Origin: Zootoca vivipara
Taxonomy: Eukaryota
NCBI RefSeq assembly: GCF_963506605.1
Contig: NC_083278.1
Coordinates: 36,952,001-37,016,000, forward strand
Length of the DNA: 64,000 nt
Direction: 5' to 3'
The notes under the pieces were generated by a model. It worked only from the letters and a program-made list of their open reading frames with translations, did no database searches and had not been told where the DNA came from. Positions 39,583 through 57,000 of this stretch are shown here, piece by piece. The position numbers were made by a program, and so were the translations under genes. Numbering within the stretch: the stretch's first letter is position 1; every line of letters starts with the position of its first letter.

Positions 39583-42351
39583 GAAATACAAAACATTCTC
39601 TCATCCAGCAAAGATATTTGGTAATTAATATTTGAAAATGATAAATTATGGTCAAGAACAATTGTTTCATTATTAAAACTGACATGTAAAAATGGTTTCT
39701 ATTGTTTTTCTTATAGAAATTGGTATGAATAAACATATACAAAAAAAAATAGCTCTGAAATGAAAATATATTGAATACAATGAGGACTCTTAACTTACAC
39801 AACCTCCAGTAGTGCCTGGTGTATAGTGGGATATCTTCAGATATATGCCCTAAAGATGTCATCTAGGCTGTGAAATGGTACCTTGGAGTCCATGTAAGCT
39901 TCCTCGCTGACATTAAGATGAGATCTTCTCCATGTATACATAAATAATGTTACGCTTGACTGTAAACTCAACATTTTTTTTACCTTGAGGCGGCTGACTA
40001 CCTCTAACGCGGCATCTACAAGCCCATATGAGAATATAACTTGGCAGGCGACTTTCTTGACACCGTAAAATAAATAGATGAAGATTAGTTAGCTCAACTC
40101 TTACAGGTATTGGCTCTGAGTAAACATTTAAGAGAAGCAATTAGCCATGGTATTGTTTATATAAGCTGTATTGCCTAAATGCACGCAGGAAGGAGAGATG
40201 GTTCAGGGCACTAGGATTATACCCAGAGCAGAAATGCACTTGATAATTAAAGGAAAACACCTGCCGCTCCAAAAAAAAGAAAGGAAGCAATGCTAGCACT
40301 AGTAAAAGACTTCCCCTTAGTGCTCGGTTCCTAAGCACACCTAACTTTAAATAATTCTGGCTTTGGATATTCTGTACACCTGGGGGGGGGGGGTGAAGAA
40401 GGACCTCTAAGCTGTGCTGTCCTTGCTGCTTTAGAATATTTGAAATTGAGGCTCGTGCATATTCCCGGCTGGCTGTAGGATTATGCACATGCACCAACCT
40501 ATCTAACAAGTCTCTCTACCCCCTACTTGCTGCAGACACCTGAAACACTTTGTTTTTACTGGAAGCAATTCGGATCACTACCAGTTATGCAGTGCTTAGC
40601 ATGCATTGAAGGTTCTGCACAACCTATTATTCCATTTAGACAAATGACCCAGCACAGAAGTGTGGGTTGTAGTGTGTGTGTGTGTGTGTGTGTGTGTCCA
40701 TTTAAAAAAAACTTACTAGATGTGCCTGCATGTTGCTAGTTGATAAGTCTTGTACAGTAACTAATCACACCACATTAGTGGCTTGGTGTCTGTTCTGTGC
40801 GAACAAAAACAATTACTGCAATCTATCACAACCATATGATAGCAAACACATCGCTTCTTATACACACAGCCTAAAATTTACAGGCCGATTCTCAAAAGGA
40901 TATAGGGAAATCTCTTAGCAATTATAGTTAAAATAAAAATGCCCACTTAATGTTTTTAATATCTGTAAAAGAACAGCATTGTGGGGTTTAGTTTCTGTCT
41001 GTCTTATTGTAGGTCACTTTAGGTTGCGCTGAACAAGAGAAAGTGACTAACAAATTTAATAAAGACTTAAAATAATCACTGGTGGTGACGGTTAGGGCTG
41101 AAAACCCCATTGTAAGCTTTCAATACGATTCTCCAGTAATTATAATAAAACAGTTACTACCGCATAATTGACAATCATTACAGTAATTAGTATATGTGTC
41201 GGCCACTTTTCTGTTCATTTATTTTGGGATAGAATTTCCAGCAGAGACTTCTGCATCTGAATCTAAGCTTTAAAATAACAAAAATATTTATCATATAAAC
41301 ACTGTACAGTAATTAAATACATTTAGCACTGCATTCGTGATAACATGGATATTATGTAATGGAGGACAACAGTTTTGACGGAAAGTAGATGCAGCCACCT
41401 TGTTTTTTACTCAAATATAAACTTCAGTTAATGTGTTCACTGTTAGGGAAAAAATGGGTTGCCTTCTGAAGCTCTGTTGTTGCCTCCCTCCTCCCCCAAA
41501 GACTCCATTTATCCGGGTGAGTGAACTTGGTATTACCAGCAGTCCTCTTGGTGAAAATCTGTGGAAACAAAGTGCCAATAATGTGGCCAACATTGACTCA
41601 AAAAACACTCAGAGCTTTCCCCCAAATTCCAGAGTTAATTTCTGGAGTGACACTTGCCCCACACCTTAGACTTCTCTTGAGATAAATTACTGGCCAAAAT
41701 TCATCAGAAAATAACTATTACATTTTCTGAGAATATTTTATTCTTTGGACTCCTCCTGAATTGCTGGATACTTCTATTCCCACCAAGAGTATTTGGCAAC
41801 CACTCCGCCCACTAACAGAGTTAAACACAGATCCAGTTTTAATACTGTTTAGAATTGCTGAAGGAAGCAATTCCATCTTTGCCTTACTCCAACTTACCAG
41901 TGCAAACAAAAATGTATGTATGTATTATACTAATCATTAACTGAATTGAAATTTCACGGTAGAAGTTTCTGTGAATGTTTGAGAAGTCCACTACCCCACT
42001 TGGACACAAGATCTGGGAAAGTGCTTCCCTTCTCCAATGCCCACACCATGCTGGACGGGACGGGATGACAGACATTTTGCTCACCCCTAGAATCCAGTTT
42101 ACAGAATCCAGATCCTCTCCTTCAGTAGTTTGTATCAGGCCTTTGTAGCGCTCAGTTTTTGTTTACTTTCGCACCACTCTTCAATGATTGTTTAGGCTAT
42201 TTTAAAAAGGGCTCAACTATAGCAGTGGCAAATAAATGCAACTGAAGTGTGTTTTGTTCTCTGACTCTCAAAGGCACATATATATTTAGGGGAGGTTTCC
42301 ACACAATAACACTATTATATAGAGCTATTTACAAAAATAAAAACCACAAAC

Positions 42352-42429
42352 CTTTATGCCCGCTGACTGTTGCCTAGAATTCAGGGCGTCAGATACTAAC
42401 TCAGCAGTCTTTGCTTTGTATCAGGTGGT
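42352..42429 (-). CDS. IMPG1: IMPG1 terminal coding exon; (R)[10 protein letters not shown] when joined directly to the EGF exon (stop 42398-42396)
   Basis: ccttcttttccttacag|A acceptor; the RxPD start resembles human RLPD (recalled); possible donor AAG|gtttgt at 42352. Confidence 0.72.
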
Positions 42430-45042
42430 CTGTAAGGAAAAGAAGGATATGAATGTTTACCGCATGCTGGTGTGTGCAAGCCATCAAAGCCAAAAGCTAG
42501 AGCAGAAAGTGCTAACAGTGCAGAAGTGCTAACAAGAATGTTCTGGTCTGAAGCTGTGACAGAGGTTTTAGAGACATTGAGGGTTAGTCCTTTTTAGTTG
42601 TGAAACACCAAAGGCAAGTTGAAGTTGGTTGTTAACAAGGGCAACTAAGAGAAGACCCATTTTGAAGAGGAACGAGTAGTATTTGCATGCATTTTACCTC
42701 CATTCTCTGTTCTGTGGTCATGCTTTTGCAGTTCTCGATCACTGCTCTCTGAAGGACTGATACAAGCACTTACATTACAGGGCCCATGACACAAACTACT
42801 GATGGGTTCATGGTGGTCAAAGGCAGGATTAATTCTGACAGCATTCTCTGTGTTGCTTTGGCTGAGAGGAGGACCTCTACAAGGCAGAACATGTTTGTTT
42901 AGGGTAAGACTTCCTGTCTGTAGTTTTTAAAAGTTCCAAAAAAAACTGTTGGGGGAGGGTTAAGCTGCTTACTCCAGTTTAGGCTTGGTATTGCATTTTC
43001 TTCGCAACTTATATATTAAAGTGATGAGAAGAATAACTAGGCTTAATAAGCCAAGCATCAAAGCTTTGGAGATGTTGGACCGGGTAGGTGCTGGAGCGTA
43101 TTTTGCACAACGCCCTTGGCTGTTTCTACGGGCTGGGCATCTAAAACATGGAGGGAAAGGGAAGCAAAGCAGTTTTATGTCAAAACAAGGGCATGCAGGA
43201 AAAACAATTCAAAACAGGTTCTCCATGCCTGTCCTAAACTCTTCAATCTGTGTTTCAATGCTGCATTTACTGTATATTTATCAGCCGGCACCCAAAGTGT
43301 AAGTAGACACAGTGAAACTTCCCTTTCCTATCTTTCTCCCAGCTCAGATATGCTCCAGGGGTCCCCACCATCACTTGGAGGCACACAGGGGCAAGAGAGT
43401 GAAGGGGAAGTCCTATAGCTCATGTGGATGTCAATTCCACAAGCGGGCTGATTCCACTGAATGCCAGTCATTTATAGGATAGCTCATTTGGGTAGAGCGT
43501 GGTGCTGATAATGCCAAAGTTGCAGGTTCGATGCCCCTAGAGGACAGCTGACTATTCCTCCATTGCAGGGAGTTGGACTAGATTATCCTCATGGTCCCTT
43601 CCAACTCTGTCATTCTATTCCATATTAACTTTTTAATTGTTTGATTTCTTCTTGTAAGACACCCTGAGGACTGCCATAGAGTGCGCTATAAATGCTGTAC
43701 ATAAATTATGGTAATAATACTGTAATAGAATTGCTAATAATAATAACATGGTGTAAGTGGCTGGCAGGCAAATATGTGTTCATTCAGGTTCATTTCCTAT
43801 ACAGAGACATCTCCCACCACAAGCACGGCGAAGCCTCAGATACTTACCTCATGAAGCTCCATATGCTCACTTGGAATGGTGGAAGGTCCTATAAGGAAAA
43901 GAGCTTGGAGCAGGTCTTCCTCACAAGAGGTGCCCGGGGGGCAAGGAAAGGCCAACCTCCCATTTTAGAATATAGAAGCGGGGGGTTGTATCCAAAGCAA
44001 CACAGCGGAGTTCTGCTGGGGCAACGACATTTCCTCTCCTCACTCGACCCACTCCCAAAATGTTCTCCAGAGCATCTCCCAAACCCTGGAGCTGATTTTG
44101 AGGGTGTGCAGGGGGGGGGGGGCTTCAGGGGAGAGGAGGGAAATGTTCCGTTCTGCTAGCGCGTGTCCCTTGCAATAGCAGAACAGGTGCATACCAGGTA
44201 TGCAGCACATGCATTCCTCTCTCCATAACAGGCATGGATATAGGGAGGTTCACATTCTTATTTTGTTTTTCTGGTATGCCTGGTGAGGCGACTGAAGGAC
44301 TTCCTGTCAGTATCTATCAAATATGCTACGAGGAAACTCCCAAGATTACCTCCTTCAATCTACAGATTCTTAAAATGAGCTAAATCTAAACAAAGCGTCT
44401 GATCCATTACACAGCTGACAAGTACATGTAATCTGACAAAAATAACATTTAACGTTGAAGCCCTTTCTGCTGGGCTGCATGAAGTAGATTCCAGCTTATG
44501 GCAAACAATAGAGGTGGGAAGTCAACGTGACCATGTGGAAACCCAAAACTTGATGCTGAGCACAGGCTCATAACAAAGCACTGGCCCATTTAGACCAGTA
44601 TTGTTACCATGACAACCAGGAGCTCTCCTGGGATCTTCCCAGTCCTGCTACCAGAGAGCTTTACAATTGGGAATTTTCTGTAGGGATGCCATAAACCACT
44701 GTTCCCTCCCTAGTCAATGTCTAACCAAGAATAATGGCTGCATTCTATCATGTGATGCTGTTTGCATGATGCAATAGATTCCATAATATATTTCAAATTC
44801 TACAGCAGCATTGATATTCATAATATTCATAATCACAATCGGTCCTGCCACCCTCACAGGCATACTTGGTAGGGATGTGGGGAGAGGGCCTTCTTAGTGA
44901 CTGGCCCCAAAACTTTGGAATTCTCTCCCTGGAGAAGCTAGACTGGCTCCTTCCTTGTCCGGAAGGACAAGAAGGAACAGACTTCTTTTAATGAAAGGGC
45001 TGGTGCCCTGCTGCTTTTATTGTAAGTATCGGTGTGTTTTTA

Positions 45043-45082
<40 letters not shown>

Positions 45083-48000
45083 TGTGTGTGTTTGATTGGT
45101 GTTTAATTGTTTTATAATTATTTTTAAAACAAATAATTTATATTAAAAATGTTTTTAGCTGTTCTTATTTTCTCTCTTTTAAGCCGCCTTGAGTCCCTGG
45201 CCAAGGGAAAGAGAGGGATAAAAATAAATACATATTAATATAATAGTGATGGCACTTACCTACACACTGCCCCTCTTCCTGGAACCAATTCACACTTGCC
45301 ACCATTAACACACAAGTGTGGCTCAATCTCACACAGGCTACGGCACGGCAGACCATCTCTTCGTACATAACCAGGCTTACAAAGGCAATCGGCCTCTTTC
45401 GTCCAGTCGTTCTTTACGCACTGTGAAAATTCGTCGCATCCCATGAACTTGCAAGGATCTGCTTGATCAGCTGTAAAAGAAAAGGATAATCTTTTTTTTA
45501 AAAAAATGGGTCCATTGCTGCAGTGCCACATATCACTTGGCAAAAACTTACTCTTCACTGAGGAGGGAAACAGGAGCTCTCCACAAATACGAGTCTATCA
45601 GTAAAATACATCTTAGAAAAAGAGCCAGCATCATTTTGCTTTTACAAACTGCAGTTATGGATTCTTTTCTTTGGTGATCTGGCTTTCTGTTTACTTGATT
45701 CTCCTGCCTGTGACAGTCATATGCTCAGACTAATAAAGGAGCTGCATATTACAAATAGTAGGAGCCCTGTATCTAGTGCTCCTCTCCATGTCTTAATATA
45801 ATTCATCCCACGTTCTAACCAGCTTGGCTTAGTATGCAAGGAATTGCCGGTGCTGGCATTGGTATAACCAAGAAGCTATGGCATGGCTGGCAGGTAAGGG
45901 CGTTCTGGGCAGGCTGTGACACAGAAGCCCACCTGAAAATGGCCCGAGTCCCACCAGCGGTTCCTAGTCTACTGTTTGAGAAACACTGGTCTAATGACAC
46001 CACTGGTATTTATTATAACATTTATTTTTAAATACTTTTTTAAAAATTTATTTTTAAATACTTTTAAAGTATTTTTAAATACTTTTAAAGTATTTTTAAA
46101 TACTTTAAGTGCTATAAGATTTCTTATCTGATCTTTTTGGAAATCCTCTTGAAGATCTCCCAACTCTTAGAACCACTAGCTAGGAACAACTGCGGGAGAG
46201 CGCTACTACTCTCATGCCCTGCTTGTAGGATTCCTGAAGGCAACTGTTTGAGTACTGTGGGAAGCAGGATCCTGGCCATTGGTCTGATCCAGCAGGGCTT
46301 TCATTTCTGGAAAGGAGTCCTCTTCCCTCTCCGAAATAGTCTGCTACCCACGCAAGCCTGTGACTCATAGCTGCGTGTGTCACTTGGCTCAGTTTCCTTG
46401 GCAGTCTTGCCTCATCTCCAAATATCTGAGAACCAGTATGTAGATCTTTTTCTCATTTTTCCACAACACTGAACTTTTAATTTTATATCTCCCAGGCTTT
46501 TTTTTTTTAAAAAAAGAGAGAGAATGTAACAGTGTTGAAAAAAATCCTTTAGGATATCCTAAGGAAACTGGTCCAAGTAATTGTGTGCCTTGCACCGAAT
46601 TTATTAGAATATCCGTTATTCTAGCAATCCCCAACTAGTCTTACAACACTGAAATAAAAGCCATCCTTTAATCTGGAGATTATATATTTCTGCAGAATCT
46701 TAGAGACAAAGTTGGTTCAGACATAATCCTATTTTTTCAAGTAATGAGTTTTCATCCTACCCTTAAACAAATAGGAAAGCAAGATATATTTGTTCTTCTA
46801 CATATAACCAATCAGGCATTTGTCGACTTCAGTTTTCATTCATAGTTCATTCATTCATCTATTCCAGGGTTTCCCAAAATTTTCAGCTGTTTTTTGGACT
46901 ACAACTCCCATCATCCCTAGCTAGCAGGAACAGTGGTCAGGGATCATAGCAGCCAACTCCTAGGCCTCCCCATAAAATATTTGAGGGACCCCCCAAGTTA
47001 TATAGGTGTTGCCATTCAAATGGTTTGTGAATCTTGTGATTATGTGGGGGGGGGGACTTACCTGGATCCCCCAATATTTTATTCCACTTGGGACCCCTGT
47101 CAGAGATGATGGGAGTTGTAGTCCATCAACAGCTGGAGACCCAAGTTTGGGAAACCCTAATCTAGTCCCATCCCTTGCTCAGTGCAGGAAATCCAGACCA
47201 AGAGCATTCCCCAAGAGATGGATCTCCAAAGAATCTCATGCGCTGCCACCCAGGTAAATGGTTCCACTGTTGAACTGTTCCTAGAGAGCAGCCCTGGTGG
47301 ATCAGAACAGTGACCCATCTAGTACTACCAGTATCCTGTTCTATTAGCTGCCTGTGGGAAGCCCACAAAAGGAAGCTGACCACAACCACACCTGACTGAT
47401 GATTTCAAACAACTGGTACTCAGAAGCATATTGCCTCCATCAGTGGAGGAACAACATAGCTATTAGGATTAGTAGTCACTGGAAGCCTTAGCCTCTATGA
47501 ATTTGTCTAATCCTTTTATAAAGTCATCCTGTTACTTAATCCCATTAGATCTAGACCTGCCCTCTCGGGCAGCAGACAAGATGTCTCTGCCCTCTTGTAG
47601 GTGACAGTCCTTCAGGTATCTGACTACAGCTATCATGTCCTCTGTGTCTTCCCTTCCCCAGGATAAAGAGACCTAGTTCCTTCACCCGTTCTTCATAGGA
47701 CTTCTTTGCAATACCCTTCACCACCGTTGTCCTCTGAACCAGCTCCAAATGTCTACAACCTTCTCAAACTGCAGTGCTGAAGAACCCCCAGAGGAGGCCT
47801 GGCTACTGCAGTGTCTCATCCCTTCAGACCTACATAAAAACAAATGATCAACTATGTTTGGTTTCGCTTACAGTGCTTTTTGCTGCATTTAATCTCACAT
47901 TTTAATCCACAAACTTTGTTCTAGTTAGGAAAGGGGCACAATTTAACACCCATCTTGTTTATCTCATTTAAATGCGCCATCAGCATTCCAGGATGTGGGG

Positions 48001-51000
48001 TAGAAGGAGGATCCTCCAGGACTGTTGTCAAGACAACATTTTAAAGTCATGAATGTTGGCAATGGCAGCAGAGTCATGATAATGCCATGTCAACATACTA
48101 CGGAAATTTTCTTCAGCGGAACCTGAAGTGCCTCACATCTGTGGGAGGATGAGGACAGAAGTTCACAAAGAGTTGTGAATGCATCTTTGCTTAAAATGGG
48201 GAGGGACTAAAAGCCAGAACGAGTACAGCCACAAGTACACAGTGACACACGCAACTTCAGATAAGTAGTTCACATTGCACAGTTGCTATGCCATCTTGAG
48301 ATATTTCTCCCAGTTCCTGTCTGTGATTGCATTAAGGTTCTCTCCGTTACTGTAGCCTGGCTGCCAGCCTCCTCACCCTTCCTTGGTCAGCAGACAGTTT
48401 TCTGTTGTTAAAAATGCACACTCAGCTTCCTACTCCACCCAAGCATATAACCTCAATTTAGCAATGTGCTTATCTCGCAGCAGGGTACCCAGTGCCCATT
48501 ATGCCATGTTCCTGAAGTGTGACTCTTCAAAGGAATGAGAACTCAGGACTGTAATGCCTGATGAACTCTTTCACCAGTTTTGTAGAATGGGTGGCCAAAT
48601 AAACAGATGCTCTTGAGTGCTGCAGCTGCCGTAGGAAGTGTGTGCAAATCAGCAGAATAACTCAATGACAGCAGCATGTTGATCAGAAAACCAAGTGAAC
48701 CTTGGGCTATGTTGGGACCATAGCTGCCAAGCACCCCGTTTTCCCTGGGAAACCCCCGTTTTTACTTACCTTTTCCCGGTGGTCCCCCGTATCACTTCGT
48801 CTCCCGTTTTTCTCCGTTATTTTCTCCTGCCGGCGGCCATTTTTTTCTTTCTGATTTGCCCATCTATGGGCACAAAAAATGGCCGCCGCCGGCTTCAAAA
48901 GTCGCATCTACACATGACCGTAAGTGCGTAGACGTCACTTCCGGTGTCGGCGGCGGCCATTTTGGGTGCCCATAGATGGGCGGGGCAACACCGGAAGTTG
49001 TGTTGATGCACTTCCGGTCATGCGTAGAAGCTGCTTTTGAAGCCGGCGGCAGCCATTTTTGGTGCCCATAGAAGGGCAAAGCGACACCGGAAGTTACGTC
49101 GACGCAACTTCCGGTGTCACGCAGCAGTCCGGGACTTGGAAGGTAACGTTGGGACATGTGAGATACATTCTGGGAGCACATTCTCCACAGTTTTCATTCT
49201 ACTCTTAGATCTGCTTGTGGGAAAGGTCAATTCATTAAAAGAGAGACTCAGTTCTCTGCCATGTTCTACATGATGTTTGGCCGGACATTGGCCAGGGCAC
49301 TGAACAGCTAGGAAATCTCCCCACAGCCTTACAGGAGCTGCTCCCAATGAAAAGCTGCAACAGACCTGCAGCTGCAGAAGGATTGTTTCAGTCATCAGGC
49401 TGGGCCCTCCCAGCCAGCAGCTTTAACTGGCAGAAGATCCTTGCTGCTGCTTCACTTGGCAGGATGGGCCTCTTACTCTTGAGTGATTATGTTGGTGCTC
49501 TCTGTAAGCGTGAAGTACATAGAACATTTGTCAGAACTCCCACTGACTTCATTTGGACTGTGGGCAAAATAATATCTTCCTCGATTTTGGCCTATGCATC
49601 CCCTTTTTCAATAAAAGTAAATATGCAGTAGAGTCAGATTCTCTCTAGTACCCTTTTGTCAATGCTAAGGAATGCTTAAGAGCTTTACATTTTGTTATAC
49701 AAATAAATAAGTGCAAACAACATGTGCCTTGTTTAGCTTAGAATGCATCTATAAATGGCAATGTTTCTTGTCAAAATACGCATTTCCCCAATTGCTATTT
49801 TCTGTTGATAAAAAACAGCTATTTAAGCTCTTGGGCTCTGTGCCATGTTTCACAGGATTCTCAGGAGGGACCCTGATCATGACTTAGAGACAACCTGGGG
49901 CTTTTCATTCTTCCCGTCTTACAGAAAGCAACCAACACCATGAAATGCTTGCAGGAGAGCAATGTTTCTTCCCCCACTGCCCCAGTTTTTTTTTACATCA
50001 CCTGGCTCAATATCAAGGGAATAGCTGTCAATTTCAAGGTTAAGGCGCTGAGCTGCTGCATCACAAAAATCCTCCAGCACACAATGGACAGCCTCTGTGA
50101 TGTTGTACGGCACTGACTTCGCAAACTTCATTTTGCTGTTGACAATCACACTTCCATTGCGGAAGTTCAGTATTTCCAGTTGCTTGAAGCCTGTTAGGTT
50201 GGACTGTAGGTAAGGAAGAAGCTACAAAAAGAAAAAAGAAAAAGAAATAAATGAGAAAACTTTAAGTTAGTGGTGTTCAAACTTTTTTCAAAGAGGGCCA
50301 GATTTTATGAAGTGAAGGGCCATGACCAAAGGGTCAACCAAAGTTGTTGAGCTTTTTTTAAGGTTGGAGTTGTTGAGGTTTTTTTATGGTTTTACCCCAG
50401 GAAATAAACTGCCACAGGGGCTGGATTAAACCGACTGGCGGGGAGGTTTAGTCCCCTGAAACAGACTTTGGACATGCCTGCTTTAAATCCTCTATCACTG
50501 CCCACGTATCATTGATTCCACTTATATTCACTTTTCATTTTGGGGAACATAAATCATCTGCTCTGTTTCACTGACTTTATTAGCAGACTTTACATCTGCT
50601 ACCAGGTTAAGTTTCTCAGTTAGTCTTTAACTGTCTCTCTGGTTAGATCTTCTTCAATAATCTATTAAGATAGATAGAGTGCTGTTTTCCTTCTAATTAA
50701 ATTTCATAGGCTGCAATCCAGTTAAAAAAGAAATCAATGGGACTTAAGCATGCTCAAATGTGAATTGCAGCCATGGGCAAGGCAGTTCTATGGTTTCAAG
50801 AGGGTTTTGCGTGTTGTTAGTTGTTAAATTGAAAAAATGAGCCTTGGATATTTATGTCCCAGCCGCCAAAGTCAACAACGGGTACTTGTGTATACTGGGA
50901 GCTCTGCATTGCATAGCCAATAACTTAGCATGTTTTGTATGTTCTTTCATGGCAAGGAGAGCTAACACCCTCCAGCTATGATTACTCACACTTCCAACCT

Positions 51001-54000
51001 CAGCCTTCTGGCTAAGGAAGCCAAAATTGTCCTGCCCTGCAATGGCAGCAGCAGTGATCAGAGGTAGCTAAGGTAGTTCAAGGGATGCCATCCTTTTTAT
51101 CTTCTGGCGCTGGTTTCCCTTCATGCACACCTAAAAGGGAGGCCCTATCCTCTCATGCCTGCTGGGCTCTGCTTTATGGGATAAGTTAAAATATTCTCTC
51201 TCCAGCCTCCCCTCTTTCAGAGGTGCTGGTGATAGAGCCGCAGTTAGAGAGGAAGACTTTAACCACCACCTAGCTAGATACACAACTCAGGTGAAGTACA
51301 ACCCACCTGAGGGAAGTGCGGATTTTGAAAAATGAGTGTGTTTTGGGTTTTCTATTGTTTCAGAAAGCACAGGTTAGGTTTGCCGTTAAGTGTGAATTGA
51401 CTTCCTCTTCCAACCCAAGTTGAGGCAGGGATGAGGTTGAAACTACATCATCATCATCATCAAATTTCTTTGCTGCCCTTCATCACATGTGATTAGCATC
51501 ATGAACAGAGTTGGGTTGTAAGAAGAGCAGGTGCCACTTTTCTTTTTAAAATGCTTTTCATTATTTGGAATTTGTTTTTAACTTGGGGAATGGCAGGGGG
51601 GGAAATAACAGCTTGCAAATATAAATGCATTGAAAGCAACTCTTTGCTACCTACCAGCTGCATGAACTGCTGTTCGAGTGCTTTGTATTCTGAGGAACTC
51701 CGATTGAAGAGGTCATCGGAAAACCGCATGTTGGTTACTCTCAAGCTGAAGAAGACTACTAGCTCTTTGCCTTTGGCTACAGTTGTCATTGAGCTGGTGG
51801 TTACGTACTTCAGTGGAGGAGCTGGAGTCATATCCGGAGTTTCAGGCAGCGCATAGTAGCCACTTCCATCCTCACTAATTGTTGCTGGCCTCATGATGTC
51901 AACCGTATCTAGTTCAGTAGCAATATCTTGCACCCCCATGTCAAATCCTGTAGGGATGTCACTGTCAGTCACTGCCCACCCAGAGCTTGTTGCTTCAAAA
52001 GACTGGTCAATGACAATGGAAGGACCACTGGTAGTCACAGCAGGCAATAAAATGATCTGATCTGTAGGCCCCAAAATATCTTCAGGAAGAGAGGTGGGAA
52101 GAGCAGGAGAACCAATGACATACGGTATAGTACTTATTGCAGCCAAAATCTCATCGCCTGAAGATTCCAGTTCATCAGTAATCTTTGCATCTAGAAAGGA
52201 AACAACACGTTGAAGAACAAAAACACTGTAGAAAACCCACATTTAAGGTCTGCTATGGAAGATGTCGAAGTGGAATTGTTTACCTATTGTGGCATTTATG
52301 CCCTACTTTCCACTTAAAACACGCACACAAGGTGACTAAAGAATAATTAAAATCCAATTCAGGTAACTGAAATGACAGTAATTCAGCAAAATACAAATCA
52401 AGGTGCCTTATTAAAATGTCAATAAGCTGCAGCAAATAAATACAGGAATTCAACTCCAATCCATTATAGTCTCAAAAGTCCAACAGAACAATAGTGTCCT
52501 AGCTAACCACCTGGCTGCGTGAAAGTGAGGCATCCATCCATATGGAATGAGTTCCACAAGGACTTACCCACACCTCCTCTTCTACAAACACACCACAGTG
52601 GTACCTCTACTTACGTTCACCTCTGGTGACGTATGCTTCGGGATACGTACACGGCAAACCCTGAAGTATTTTTCTGGGTTTCGCCGTGTGCACATGTGCA
52701 GAAGCGCTCTACCGTGCCATGCACATGTGCAGAAGCGGTCCCTCCGGTTGTGGAAACCTCAGGATCTGACTGCGGGTTCGGAACGGATCCCGTCCGCAAC
52801 TGGAGGTACCACTGTAATTCAAACAGAGGTGTTATGCACCTGCAGTTGACATCGGGGGGGGGGGGAGGTAAGCCCTGCCTTGCATAATTGACCACCAGAC
52901 ATGGCACACGCACACCATTTGAATGGCAACGCCTATCAACTTTGGAAGACCCTGCCCCCTCAAATATTTTATTGGGGGAGACCGAAGGGACCTCGGCCCC
53001 TGGGTGTTGGCTCCTATGAATGTGTGTTATCTCAAAAGGAGACCCTATGCATGTGCAGCTGCATAATACTGTGCATGATTTGAAACCCTACATGGTGAAC
53101 GTCCCCAAGTGGATAGAGAGCTCACACTATAATAACAATAATTTATTTGTACCCTGCCCATCTGGCTGAGTCTCCCCAGCCACTCTGGGCGGCTCCCAAT
53201 AGAGTGTTAAAACAATACAGCATTAAATATTAAAAACTTCCCTTCAGATGTCTTTAAAAAATAGGATAGCTGCTTATTTCCTTGACATCTGATGGAAGGG
53301 CGTTCCACAGGGCGGGTGCCACTACCAAGAAGGCCCTCTGTCTGGTTCCCTGTAATCTCGCAATGAGGGAACCGCCAGAAGGCCTCGGCGCTGGATCTCA
53401 GTGTCCAGGCAGAACGATGGGGGTGGAGACGCTTCTTCAGGTATACAGGACCGAGGCCGTTTAGGGCTTTAAAGGTCAGTACCAACACTTTGAGTTGTGC
53501 TCGGAAACGTACTGGGAGGCAGTATAGATCTCTCAGGACCTGTGTTATGTGGTCCCGGCAGCCACTCCCAGTCACCAGTCTAGCTGCCACATTCTGGATT
53601 AATTGCAGTTTCCGGGTCACCTTCAAAGGTAGCCCCACGTAGAGCGCATTGCAGTAATCCAAGCGGGAGATAACCAGAGCATGCACCACTCTGGCGAGAG
53701 AGTCTGCAGGCAGCCTACGTACCAGATGGAGCTGGTACACAGCCGCCCTGGACACAGAATTAACCTGCGCCTCCATGGACAGCTGTGAGTCCAAAATGAC
53801 TCCCAGGCTGCGCACCTGGTCCTTCAGGGGCACAGTTACCCCATTCAGGACCAGGGAGTCCCCCACACCCACCCGCCCCCTATTCCCCCAAAACAGTACT
53901 TCTGTCTTGTCAGGATTCAACACTCCTTCAGATGTATATGTGTAGGCTGCCCTTTTCAATTGTGCTGAATGCATGGATGGCAGAGCAGGCAGAATGCATG

Positions 54001-57000
54001 ACACTGTGGACGGTGCCCGTGGGTACAGTTCTTTTCTGCCCCCCAGATAGCCATTGTGTCACTTTTAGACATTTCCCCCTAAACTATTATTTTAGTAATG
54101 ATAACTCTACATGATTACTTTCCTAATTTATCTTAGGTCACCAAATCTCCTTACAGACCGCCCCCTCCCAATAATGTTTTCTCCTAAATGTGCAAAGGCT
54201 TTGGTATTCTGTACAGAAATATAGAGTACTCAAGAGTCTGTAACCAAAAGAAATATGACAGGAAAGGGAATTAGGAGCACAGCATAAAGATAAAGGGATG
54301 ATGACAATTATTTCAAGAATAATTCACTTCAGTAGTATTGTGTCCTACAAGTTGCTATGCTGACATTTCTTGCTCAGAATCTTCATTTTTACGATTAAAT
54401 CTTCAGCAACTAATTGGTTTGACAAACTGTCGCACCTTTGATGCATGTGCAATTAGGTGCAAATTAGATGACAATGATTTGCCTTTGGTTTGAACATCAA
54501 AATGGTAAAGCTGGCTATCTCCTCGTGTGTAGTCAATACAAATTTGCTGAACACACTTATGCACATTCTTCAGTTATTCCACAAATTCACTGATTCAATA
54601 TTTCCTTAATAACTTGCCAATATACCTTGGTCAAAGGCTGAGTGGTTGCAAGACACATAAGTGGGTTACTGTTGACTTTTATTTAGGTAATTATCTTTTA
54701 ATGAAGTTTGTGTGTGACTGGGTGCAAATGAATGAATATGGTGGAATAACTTACATTTTGTTTGAACGCAGTGATTTAATTCCTTTTTGTGAATAGATTT
54801 AGGTCTGATCTGCAGTTTATTCCCCTCCACAATCCTAGTGAGTGTGGCAAAACAGATAACTCAAGTCTCTGCCATCATTTCTCCTATGCTACTGACTTGT
54901 TCTGCTATTGCAGTGCTGCTGGCAAGGAAAAAATGTCTTTGAAGTTACATTACACTCACCCACCCTATATAATCACTGTTTAGAGACCCCTTACCAGGAG
55001 TGATTCCTACAACGGCAACAGGTGAGGACAAACATCAGTGTTGCATGGACACTGGCTCCAGGGAGCCTGTTTCTCAGATATTTCTCATTGTCACCTACTG
55101 ACTTAGAAGCAGGGAGCTTCAGTGCTCAAGTTGGTGGGGGAGAATTATTACCCAAACTGTGGCATCATCCCCCTACAAAAAAGCAGATAGGCTTACTACT
55201 ACTTAGGAAAACTGAAACTTTTTTAGCTTATACATTCTAAAAAGCTGTACTTCATAAACTTAATATTCTCACCACCACCACCAAGTACCTAGAACCTTGA
55301 GTAAATTTACTGATCTGAACCGCAAACAGGTTGGGCAACAGGTGAGGTTGAGAAGACCTAACAGCATACAGAGGCTATAAACCTTGTCCCTAAATACACA
55401 TTCCTAAGATCATCTATCAAAATAGCTTCCAAGGGTTTGGTGGCCTTACATGAAAGNNNNNNNNNNNNNNNNNNNNNNNNNNNNNNNNNNNNNNNNNNNN
55501 NNNNNNNNNNNNNNNNNNNNNNNNNNNNNNNNNNNNNNNNNNNNNNNNNNNNNNNNNNNNNNNNNNNNNNNNNNNNNNNNNNNNNNNNNNNNNNNNNNNN
55601 NNNNNNNNATGCAGGGGGTTGAACTAGACGATCCTCATGGTCCCCTTCCAACTGCACAATTCTATGTTTCTATGTCAAACTATATTGAAGGTAGAAAATA
55701 GATTTATATACTCACTAACAGAAAAAAATGTTATAAGCAAAGCTTCTCTAAAACAGAACCAATTAACAACTCATGGGAACAGATTAAAATTATGAAATGG
55801 ACAGCTACGGTGAAGGATACCAAAAAATTACAAAAATGACTTACAGAAACGGATCCCTGTGATTCAATGCAGGCAACTCTCCATTTGTATGGGGTTGCGT
55901 CAGCACATAAGCCCATTCTGCCCCCACCCCATTCTGCCGATTCCACCCCTTTCCAGGGACAAAAATGATGTGTGTCTCAGTAGCTGCATGTCAGTTGGGT
56001 ACGTGCAAAATGGTTGTTGCCTGTATATGGGAGAGAAGTTAGGTTTTACAGGAATAGAAGTAGTTTACTATACAAGGTAGTAATATTTATGTGTTAAGTT
56101 TTCATATGAATCTATTTTATAAACAGTTGATAATAAAACATCTAACATGCACACAAGATAGATTAAAACTACGTCTTCATTATTAATACTTTCTCTGGTA
56201 TTGTGAAGAAATTCATTTCATGAAAAAAAAATGCAATCATTACAGTATGCTTATTATTTGCCACTGTATTTTCTGGGAAGGCACTATTTATTTCTGCTTA
56301 CTGTACTTTAACTATTTTGGGCAGCTTAGAGAATTAGTGTTTCCTAATGAAAGGATTATAAAGTGAGAGCCATGCTACTGAATTCTATAAGAGTACCAAA
56401 ACAGCGTGAGTCTAATTAGATGGCTAATATGACAGGAGGGGAATTGCAGGTCAGAGGAGGCCTATGAAAGAATCCTTTATCCGTAACTCAATTTCCTGTT
56501 TTGCTTTTATATTTTGTTGCCTCTCAAGTGCTGTTTTTTTTTTAAAAAAAGAATATGTAAGGACTACCAAAACATTATAGAAAGCAACACGCAGTTTAAG
56601 AACAAAAAGGCGTATGCACAATCCAACAGTGTTAAATCTGGGTTAAGTCCACTCAGTGCTTTTTTTTTTTCTTCTGGTGGTGTATTTTTCTGCCCCAAAT
56701 CAGAGCCTCACATCTCCTTCCCAAAGCTGGGTAACTTTCTGCCCTAGCTTAGGGACAGAGACATGATGCTCTGGCAGGGTCCGATAGCCCTCCCTTGCAT
56801 GGTGAGTTTTTCTAGAAAAAAAGCACTGAGTCCACTAATTTAAACAATTTCTCAGGGCAGAATATTATTCATTTGATTAGAATCTATAGGTAAATTTTCA
56901 GGTAAAAGCTGTTTACATTGGAATCCTGTACCCAAAAGAACATTTCAAGACAGAAAATGAAATAAGCAGCAAGTAGGTATGTATACTGAAGAACTGAGGA

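Follow-up and report, generated by a model that had tools for sequence, protein, structure and literature searches.

A Probable Cytoplasmic-Tail Exon of Membrane-Anchored IMPG1 in the Lizard Zootoca vivipara, with a Short Core Resembling That of IMPG2

Introduction

The interphotoreceptor matrix proteoglycans IMPG1 (SPACR) and IMPG2 (SPACRCAN) are paralogs. A cut within SEA-2 divides IMPG2 into an ectodomain that is shed and a fragment that stays in the membrane (PMC9478142), and this fragment is retrieved from outer segments only if lysines of its cytoplasmic tail are ubiquitinated (bioRxiv 10.1101/2025.07.29.667331). The papers that we consulted describe IMPG1 as a secreted protein only, and our search of the literature for a membrane form of IMPG1, or for an NPxY motif in IMPG2, returned nothing relevant. 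Here we analyze a 64,000-nucleotide stretch of the Zootoca vivipara genome (contig NC_083278.1, positions 36,952,001 to 37,016,000; hereafter the window, in whose own numbering all positions are given) that carries IMPG1 exons on the minus strand, and we focus on the segment 42876-42698. This segment is very probably the penultimate coding exon of a membrane-anchored IMPG1 isoform, from Zootoca vivipara or a near-identical lizard. The tail exon itself is ordinary and was previously annotated; our interest lies in the conserved core that it encodes and in the relation of this core to the tail of IMPG2. Like the membrane form of IMPG1, IMPG2 is a proteoglycan of this matrix with type I topology, and its domains come in the same order.

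Results and Discussion

The cytoplasmic-tail exon occupies positions 42698..42876 of the minus strand (179 nt) and consists of one base that completes a Glu codon, 59 codons, and one base of the following codon. Its first base, 42876, follows a canonical AG acceptor (...TGCCTTGTAG|AGGTCC) and its last base, 42698, precedes a canonical GT donor (AATGGAG|GTAAAATG), while the Glu codon GA|A is split between the 3' end of the transmembrane (TM) exon, which supplies two bases, and the first base of the tail exon. The initial annotation had described an in-phase, stop-free exon 96 bp past the TM exon, and its boundaries are exactly those of the exon established here; the peptide that it quoted is the minus-strand translation of 42875-42698 and runs on to ...R-T-E-N-G. 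The frame without stops spans 42926 to 42648 on the same strand. The openness of the exon taken alone is little evidence, because the window contains 333 stop-free stretches of at least 59 codons.

The exon is set apart from a chance frame by its match to a public annotated protein, 'interphotoreceptor matrix proteoglycan 1 [Zootoca vivipara]' (P0180), and by its conservation among sauropsids. We searched the exons singly and placed public proteins on the window with tblastn. P0180 is 100% identical over the TM and tail exons (residues 677-792, the tail exon accounting for ~734-792); the alignment crosses the 96-nt intron as a 32-codon gap with stops inside it, and nine further codons from the next exon at 42429, D-H-L-I-Q-S-K-D-C, match residues 793-801 at 100%. 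A non-coding frame left open by chance, in an intron or 3' region, would be in keeping with how common such frames are in the window and with the zero RNA coverage in the four runs examined, but the exact match to P0180 and a protein conservation that extends to birds, turtles, and fishes around an invariant core of 15 residues leave this explanation a negligible chance; judged by these comparisons, we count it as already refuted. Given this full identity to P0180 over both exons and into the next, the tail exon is not new: public annotation (RefSeq, nr) of Zootoca vivipara and of ~30 other sauropsids has it.

The neighboring exons are those of a membrane protein. The TM exon (42973..43140, minus strand, 168 nt), identified by an RNA joint and by its 100% match to P0180, encodes a ~20-residue hydrophobic stretch followed by the basic stop-transfer sequence K-L-R-R-K, and a GT-AG intron of 96 nt (42877..42972, minus strand) separates it from the tail exon. 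Further upstream lies the EGF-like exon (45260..45467, minus strand), which is supported by an RNA contig, by matches to its family, and by 100% identity to residues 607-677 of P0180. It ends on two bases of a codon and is the shared upstream exon of all the C-terminal isoforms. Downstream, a 268-nt GT-AG intron (42430..42697, minus strand) leads to the last coding exon, the start of which (42401..42429, minus strand) is supported by translations, by residues 793-801 of P0180, and by an RNA joint. The order of exons in the membrane isoform would then be EGF, TM (168 nt), 96-nt intron, tail (179 nt), 268-nt intron, and last coding exon, giving a cytoplasmic tail of ~80 residues in all. After the tail exon, the last exon contributes eight residues, H-L-I-Q-S-K-D-C, and a stop codon at 42403-42401.

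The assignment to IMPG1 rather than to a paralog draws first on the EGF-like exon. A search of a representative protein library with this exon (query 45468-45262, 69 residues) returned 250 proteins at E <= 0.001; we took the best 150 of these 250 as IMPG relatives, sorted their C-termini, and looked up their source names. The exon matches both IMPG1 and IMPG2, with E values down to 4e-39, and its Pfam EGF matches are sub-threshold. Where names were checked among these 150, matches of 64-90% identity are IMPG1, and IMPG2 appears from ~62% down. Three groups emerge from their C-termini. In the first, IMPG2, a long tail follows a TM helix; the second, fish IMPG1, has the same arrangement; and the third is IMPG1 whose end is short and secreted, or in which the TM exon is joined directly to such an end. 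By single-sequence phmmer, the sole match to the lizard TM and tail exons among the best 150 is the IMPG1 of Phrynosoma platyrhinos (P0007), with 69% identity over the TM exon and 70% over the tail exon. This protein shares a cluster with the RefSeq IMPG1 model of Sceloporus undulatus (864 residues).

A word search with the TM and tail region of Sceloporus IMPG1 (XP_042302838.1, residues 735-864) yielded 31 IMPG1 proteins from lizards, geckos, turtles, and birds, P0180 included, at E values from 1e-23 to 4e-69, 53-89% identity, and 75-100% coverage of the query region (93-100% for 30 of the 31). Every one of the 31 is named IMPG1 by at least one source and has PF01390 (SEA) recorded on it. A word search with the 59-residue exon gave no match; it covers proteins of 32-103 residues alone and is uninformative on full-length relatives. 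The gene thus characterized has the features of an IMPG1 orthologue, in that its best matches are named IMPG1 and come ahead of IMPG2, and in that it has SEA domains, a G/SxxV site in SEA-2, and tandem EGF-like domains after it. The IMPG1 models of Sceloporus (XP_042302838.1), Anolis sagrei, Pogona, Podarcis, Terrapene, and Falco agree with it in exon order and in their invariant core, and nothing substantial distinguishes the window from annotated sauropsid IMPG1. Single-residue differences from P0180 do occur elsewhere, as with an A/V difference just after the SEA-2 motif, at ~50130. We note that the large central exon (51550-52206, minus strand) is 83% identical to P0180 by tblastn, against 97-100% in the other exons. 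Variable mucin-like sequence may account for this, as may a difference between isoforms or alleles.

We aligned the 31 distinct sauropsid IMPG1 tails with the exon of the window. The exon, placed after the TM exon, specifies three conserved blocks: a nearly invariant core, E-N-A-V-R-I-N-P-x-F-[DE]-H-[DE]-E-P; a cysteine block, F-C..C-S-V-S-A-C; and an acidic serine run, S-S-S-E-S-S-D. The columns that are at least 90% invariant are E-x-A-V-R-I-N-P-x-F-x-H-x-E-P, the cysteines of F-C...C-x-V-S-A-C, and the S-E of the serine run. In the window the core covers 42804..42848 of the minus strand (15 residues), with the NPAF codons at 42830-42819; the sauropsid IMPG1 tail ends ~45 residues past the core. 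The window and P0180 have in common a one-codon deletion relative to other lizards (S-D-R-E-L against S-D-Q-G-x-L), a kind of change expected of coding sequence.

Within the cysteine block, the codons for C-N-V-S-A-C contain a donor-like GTAAGT (42768..42773, minus strand). If the exon ended there, at AAT|GTAAGT (42774), the tail would finish as ...G-P-C-N followed by T-T and a stop from the last exon. The donor core is a perfect one, and the resulting phase does lead to an early stop in the last exon. All 31 orthologous models and P0180, however, read C-[SN]-V-S-A-C at this position and go on into the conserved S-S-S-E run, and fish IMPG1 tails align past the site too. We consider an exon end at 42774 very unlikely and rejected the GTAAGT at 42773 as a true donor, given that all orthologous models continue through it as C-S-V-S-A-C.

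Each of the three frames of the last coding exon (42352-42429, minus strand) runs into a stop, and at least two of these frames are in use. Joined directly to the EGF-like exon, it supplies 10 residues and a stop in an alternative frame, which is the secreted form, and this end is similar to those of secreted IMPG1 in echidna, newt, and toad. We placed four RNA runs labeled as the same species on 39700-45650. The EGF-like exon (45260-45467) is covered by an RNA contig that joins it to 43140 and to 42429. Contigs of one run (X14) contain the joint 45260->43140, from EGF to TM exon with GT..AG ends, and the joint 45260->42429, from EGF to last exon with the TM and tail exons both skipped. Skipping both exons would switch the frame of the last exon and produce the secreted C-terminus known from mammals. 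An X14 contig also extends from the last exon (42348/42352) into 13 letters that match 41554-41542 of the minus strand, which implies a further 3'-untranslated exon at ~41558. The junction from 42348/42352 to ~41558 is canonical (AAG|GTTTGT ... CCACAG|A) only if the first downstream base is G, not the A of the window; otherwise it is non-canonical.

The membrane form could also end differently, with the main product retaining the 268-nt intron and the tail exon serving as a terminal exon that reaches 42645. Isoforms of this type, continuing as G-G-K-M-H-x-N..., are annotated in Lacerta agilis (X2/X5), Podarcis raffonei (X4), Hemicordylus, geckos, and two birds (Corapipo X2 being one of them), and the G-G-K-M-H start is common to them; in the window, such a read-through would stop at 42647-42645. 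On the other hand, 22 of the 33 models listed, including P0180 and most birds and turtles, splice from the tail exon to the last exon, with a conserved end that in other species is of the type G-G-H-Q-x-x-x-Q-x-Q-D. The read-through sequence shows no conservation past G-G-K-M-H, and the common start overlaps the donor site GTAAAATGCA. Retention as the main outcome is therefore unlikely, and we favor splicing to the last exon. In the retained part of the intron (42645-42697, minus strand), the opening codons G-K-M-H-A-N, common to lizard, gecko, and bird read-through isoforms, overlap the donor GTAAAATGCA and may owe their conservation to splicing rather than to coding.

By profile comparison, the nearest relatives of the sauropsid tail exon are the long tails of fish IMPG1, not those of IMPG2. 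With hhalign, the profile of the sauropsid exon aligns to fish IMPG1 tails over 54 columns (Prob 97%, E 8.4e-11). A TM helix with an NPxF tail is found in proteins named IMPG1 by their sources from gar, Arapaima, several teleosts, stingray, elephant shark, and coelacanth. The tail core is very probably ancestral; teleosts, gar, coelacanth, and cartilaginous fishes all have it in their IMPG1. In fish IMPG1, the TM helix is followed after ~29 residues by the corresponding sequence F-E-N-T-[LV]-R-V-N-P-V-F-E-N-D-D and then by a P-C/serine-rich stretch. The fish tails, unlike those of sauropsids, are ~60-70 residues longer (E-N-I-H-L-S-I-E-I-P..., D-F-H-H-C); the sauropsid tail is without this distal stretch and ends soon after the 179-nt exon. 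In a few models, those of coelacanth (P0054) and Brienomyrus (P0145) as well as P0105 and P0114 (IMPG2-type), the EGF exon is joined to an NP-motif tail without a TM helix. These look like skipping of the TM exon alone, and could be model errors or real isoforms.

The initial annotation had called the tail IMPG2-like, on the strength of 13 ungapped identities in 43 positions. In place of the human IMPG2 peptide on which it relied, we used IMPG2 proteins from the databases. The count of 13/43 is reproduced in the same register with camel IMPG2 (P0098), but falls to 9-11/43 with turtle, frog, and coelacanth and to 4-7/43 with teleosts. The GP and H identities that had been cited fall at positions that are variable inside both families. 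Profiles are more discriminating. Against 54 IMPG2 tails, the sauropsid exon profile aligns over 18 columns (Prob 23%, P 9.2e-4), with x-S-L-E-x-A-x-K-Y-N-P-M-Y-E-S-D on the IMPG2 side. The score of 24.5 compares with 9.1 +/- 1.8, and a maximum of 15.3, in 300 column permutations of the IMPG2 alignment, none of which (0/300) reaches it. The resemblance to vertebrate IMPG2 tails is thus significant in the core, although it covers just ~18 residues and fish IMPG1 is closer.

The IMPG2 core reads E-x-A-[VT]-K-[YF]-N-P-[MV]-[YF]-E-S-D and lies ~34 residues past the TM helix, against ~29 residues in IMPG1; the lizard tail has the IMPG2-type pattern ExAx[KR]xNPx[YF]E at a similar distance past the helix. 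Past the core, hhalign gave no alignment of the sauropsid tail to the IMPG2 distal blocks YYRRYP, STDFSSEEIRHIYEN, and IIELYAKDRQF. These blocks (Y-Y-R-R-Y-P, S-T-D-F-S-S-E-E-I-R-H, and I-I-E-L-Y-A-K-D-R-Q-F) are absent from sauropsid IMPG1, so that of an IMPG2 tail of ~120-160 residues only ~18 align.

So short a resemblance might have arisen by chance or by convergence on a short linear motif, without shared descent. The alignment has only 18 columns and a calibrated HH-suite probability of 23%, single-sequence phmmer gives no match, and the mean best ungapped identity over all IMPG2 tails, 7.6, is scarcely over that of shuffles, 7.1 +/- 0.4, and does not discriminate. Set against this are a P value of 9e-4 in one planned comparison with no column shuffle near the score, a motif ~29-34 residues past the TM helix in both families, the descent of IMPG1 and IMPG2 as paralogs with the same SEA-EGF-EGF-TM order, and the alignment of fish IMPG1 tails to IMPG2 tails over 64 columns (Prob 12%, P 0.0025). 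On these grounds chance or convergence is improbable, and we are fairly confident that the core (~18 residues), and nothing past it, is homologous between IMPG1 and IMPG2.

The core contains an NPx[YF] motif, and the initial annotation had read the replacement of Tyr by Phe as a difference between the paralogs. This does not hold up. Of the 54 IMPG2 cluster representatives, 24 end the motif in Tyr, among them turtle, frog, and coelacanth, and 25 in Phe, with NPMF in teleosts and NPVF in a marsupial and camel; fish IMPG1 has both residues. The Y/F difference does not set one paralog apart from the other. All 32 sauropsid IMPG1 tails have Phe and none Tyr, and a local F/Y contrast between IMPG1 and IMPG2 within sauropsids is plausible. 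Phe is tolerated in place of Tyr in recognition by phosphotyrosine-binding (PTB) domains that is independent of phosphorylation. The N-P-A-F of the window (42830-42819) stands downstream of the TM helix and its basic stop-transfer sequence, which would place it in the cytosol. In this it is like the FxNPxY signals of the LDL receptor family, APP, and integrin beta tails, type I proteins that likewise have an NPx[YF] in their cytosolic tails. The canonical FxNPxY has an aromatic residue at -5, whereas IMPG1 has Arg (31/31 sauropsid proteins) and IMPG2 has Lys, or another non-aromatic residue in the sequences shown.

A G/SxxV autoproteolysis motif of the type defined for SEA domains (PMC9478142) is present in SEA-2 of the window as N-G-S-V-I-V (50141..50158, minus strand). 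Autoproteolysis of IMPG1 at this site would leave a membrane stub that retains the tail described here, and the NPxF/acidic core might in turn direct the trafficking or retrieval of the stub in photoreceptors, as a signal for sorting or for the binding of adaptors; the handling of the IMPG2 stub is under study in this respect. We put this forward tentatively, as one possible reading, by analogy with the SEA-2 cleavage and lysine-dependent retrieval of IMPG2 in the two studies cited above. A broader version, in which the block ExA[VT][KR]xNPx[YF][ED] would be a signal for sorting or retrieval of SEA-cleaved stubs in photoreceptors that predates the split of IMPG1 and IMPG2, is possible but rather doubtful.

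Several observations weigh against the picture of a membrane-anchored IMPG1 whose tail carries a signal in common with IMPG2. No read or contig covers 42698-42876 in the four RNA runs placed over 39700-45650; these runs are probably not from eye tissue, and it is the public gene model, together with conservation, that speaks for use of the tail exon in this animal. A Pfam search of the tail exon matched no family, and single-sequence phmmer of the exon against the IMPG proteins (best 150 of 250) found no IMPG2, so that profiles are needed to see the relation. The minority of annotated isoforms that keep the 268-nt intron indicates that the C-terminal end may vary. The motif, with its non-aromatic residue at -5, is not a canonical FxNPxY.

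Other features of the window lie outside the coding exons. Within the intron that separates the EGF and TM exons, 43473-43542 of the plus strand resembles the transfer RNA (tRNA)-like head of a probable short interspersed element (SINE), at 22.3 bits with the Rfam tRNA model, which is below threshold. This head accounts for very deep contigs of 31-33 letters at 43496-43532 in runs X1 and X14. GT/CA microsatellites at 40664-40706 and 45032-45101 were skipped as repeats in read placement, and a 152-base run of N occupies 55457-55608.

Conclusions

In database models, IMPG1 of reptiles, birds, and fishes exists not only as the secreted form but also as a membrane protein, whose inner tail is strongly conserved and has a core in common with IMPG2. 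If the core is indeed the signal proposed here, non-mammalian vertebrates would run two membrane-anchored IMPGs that bear it, and mammals would have lost it from IMPG1 along with the TM exon. We regard the shared IMPG1/IMPG2 core as no discovery but as a small, testable lead, modest and unexplored, on how the membrane stubs of these proteoglycans may be sorted in photoreceptors.

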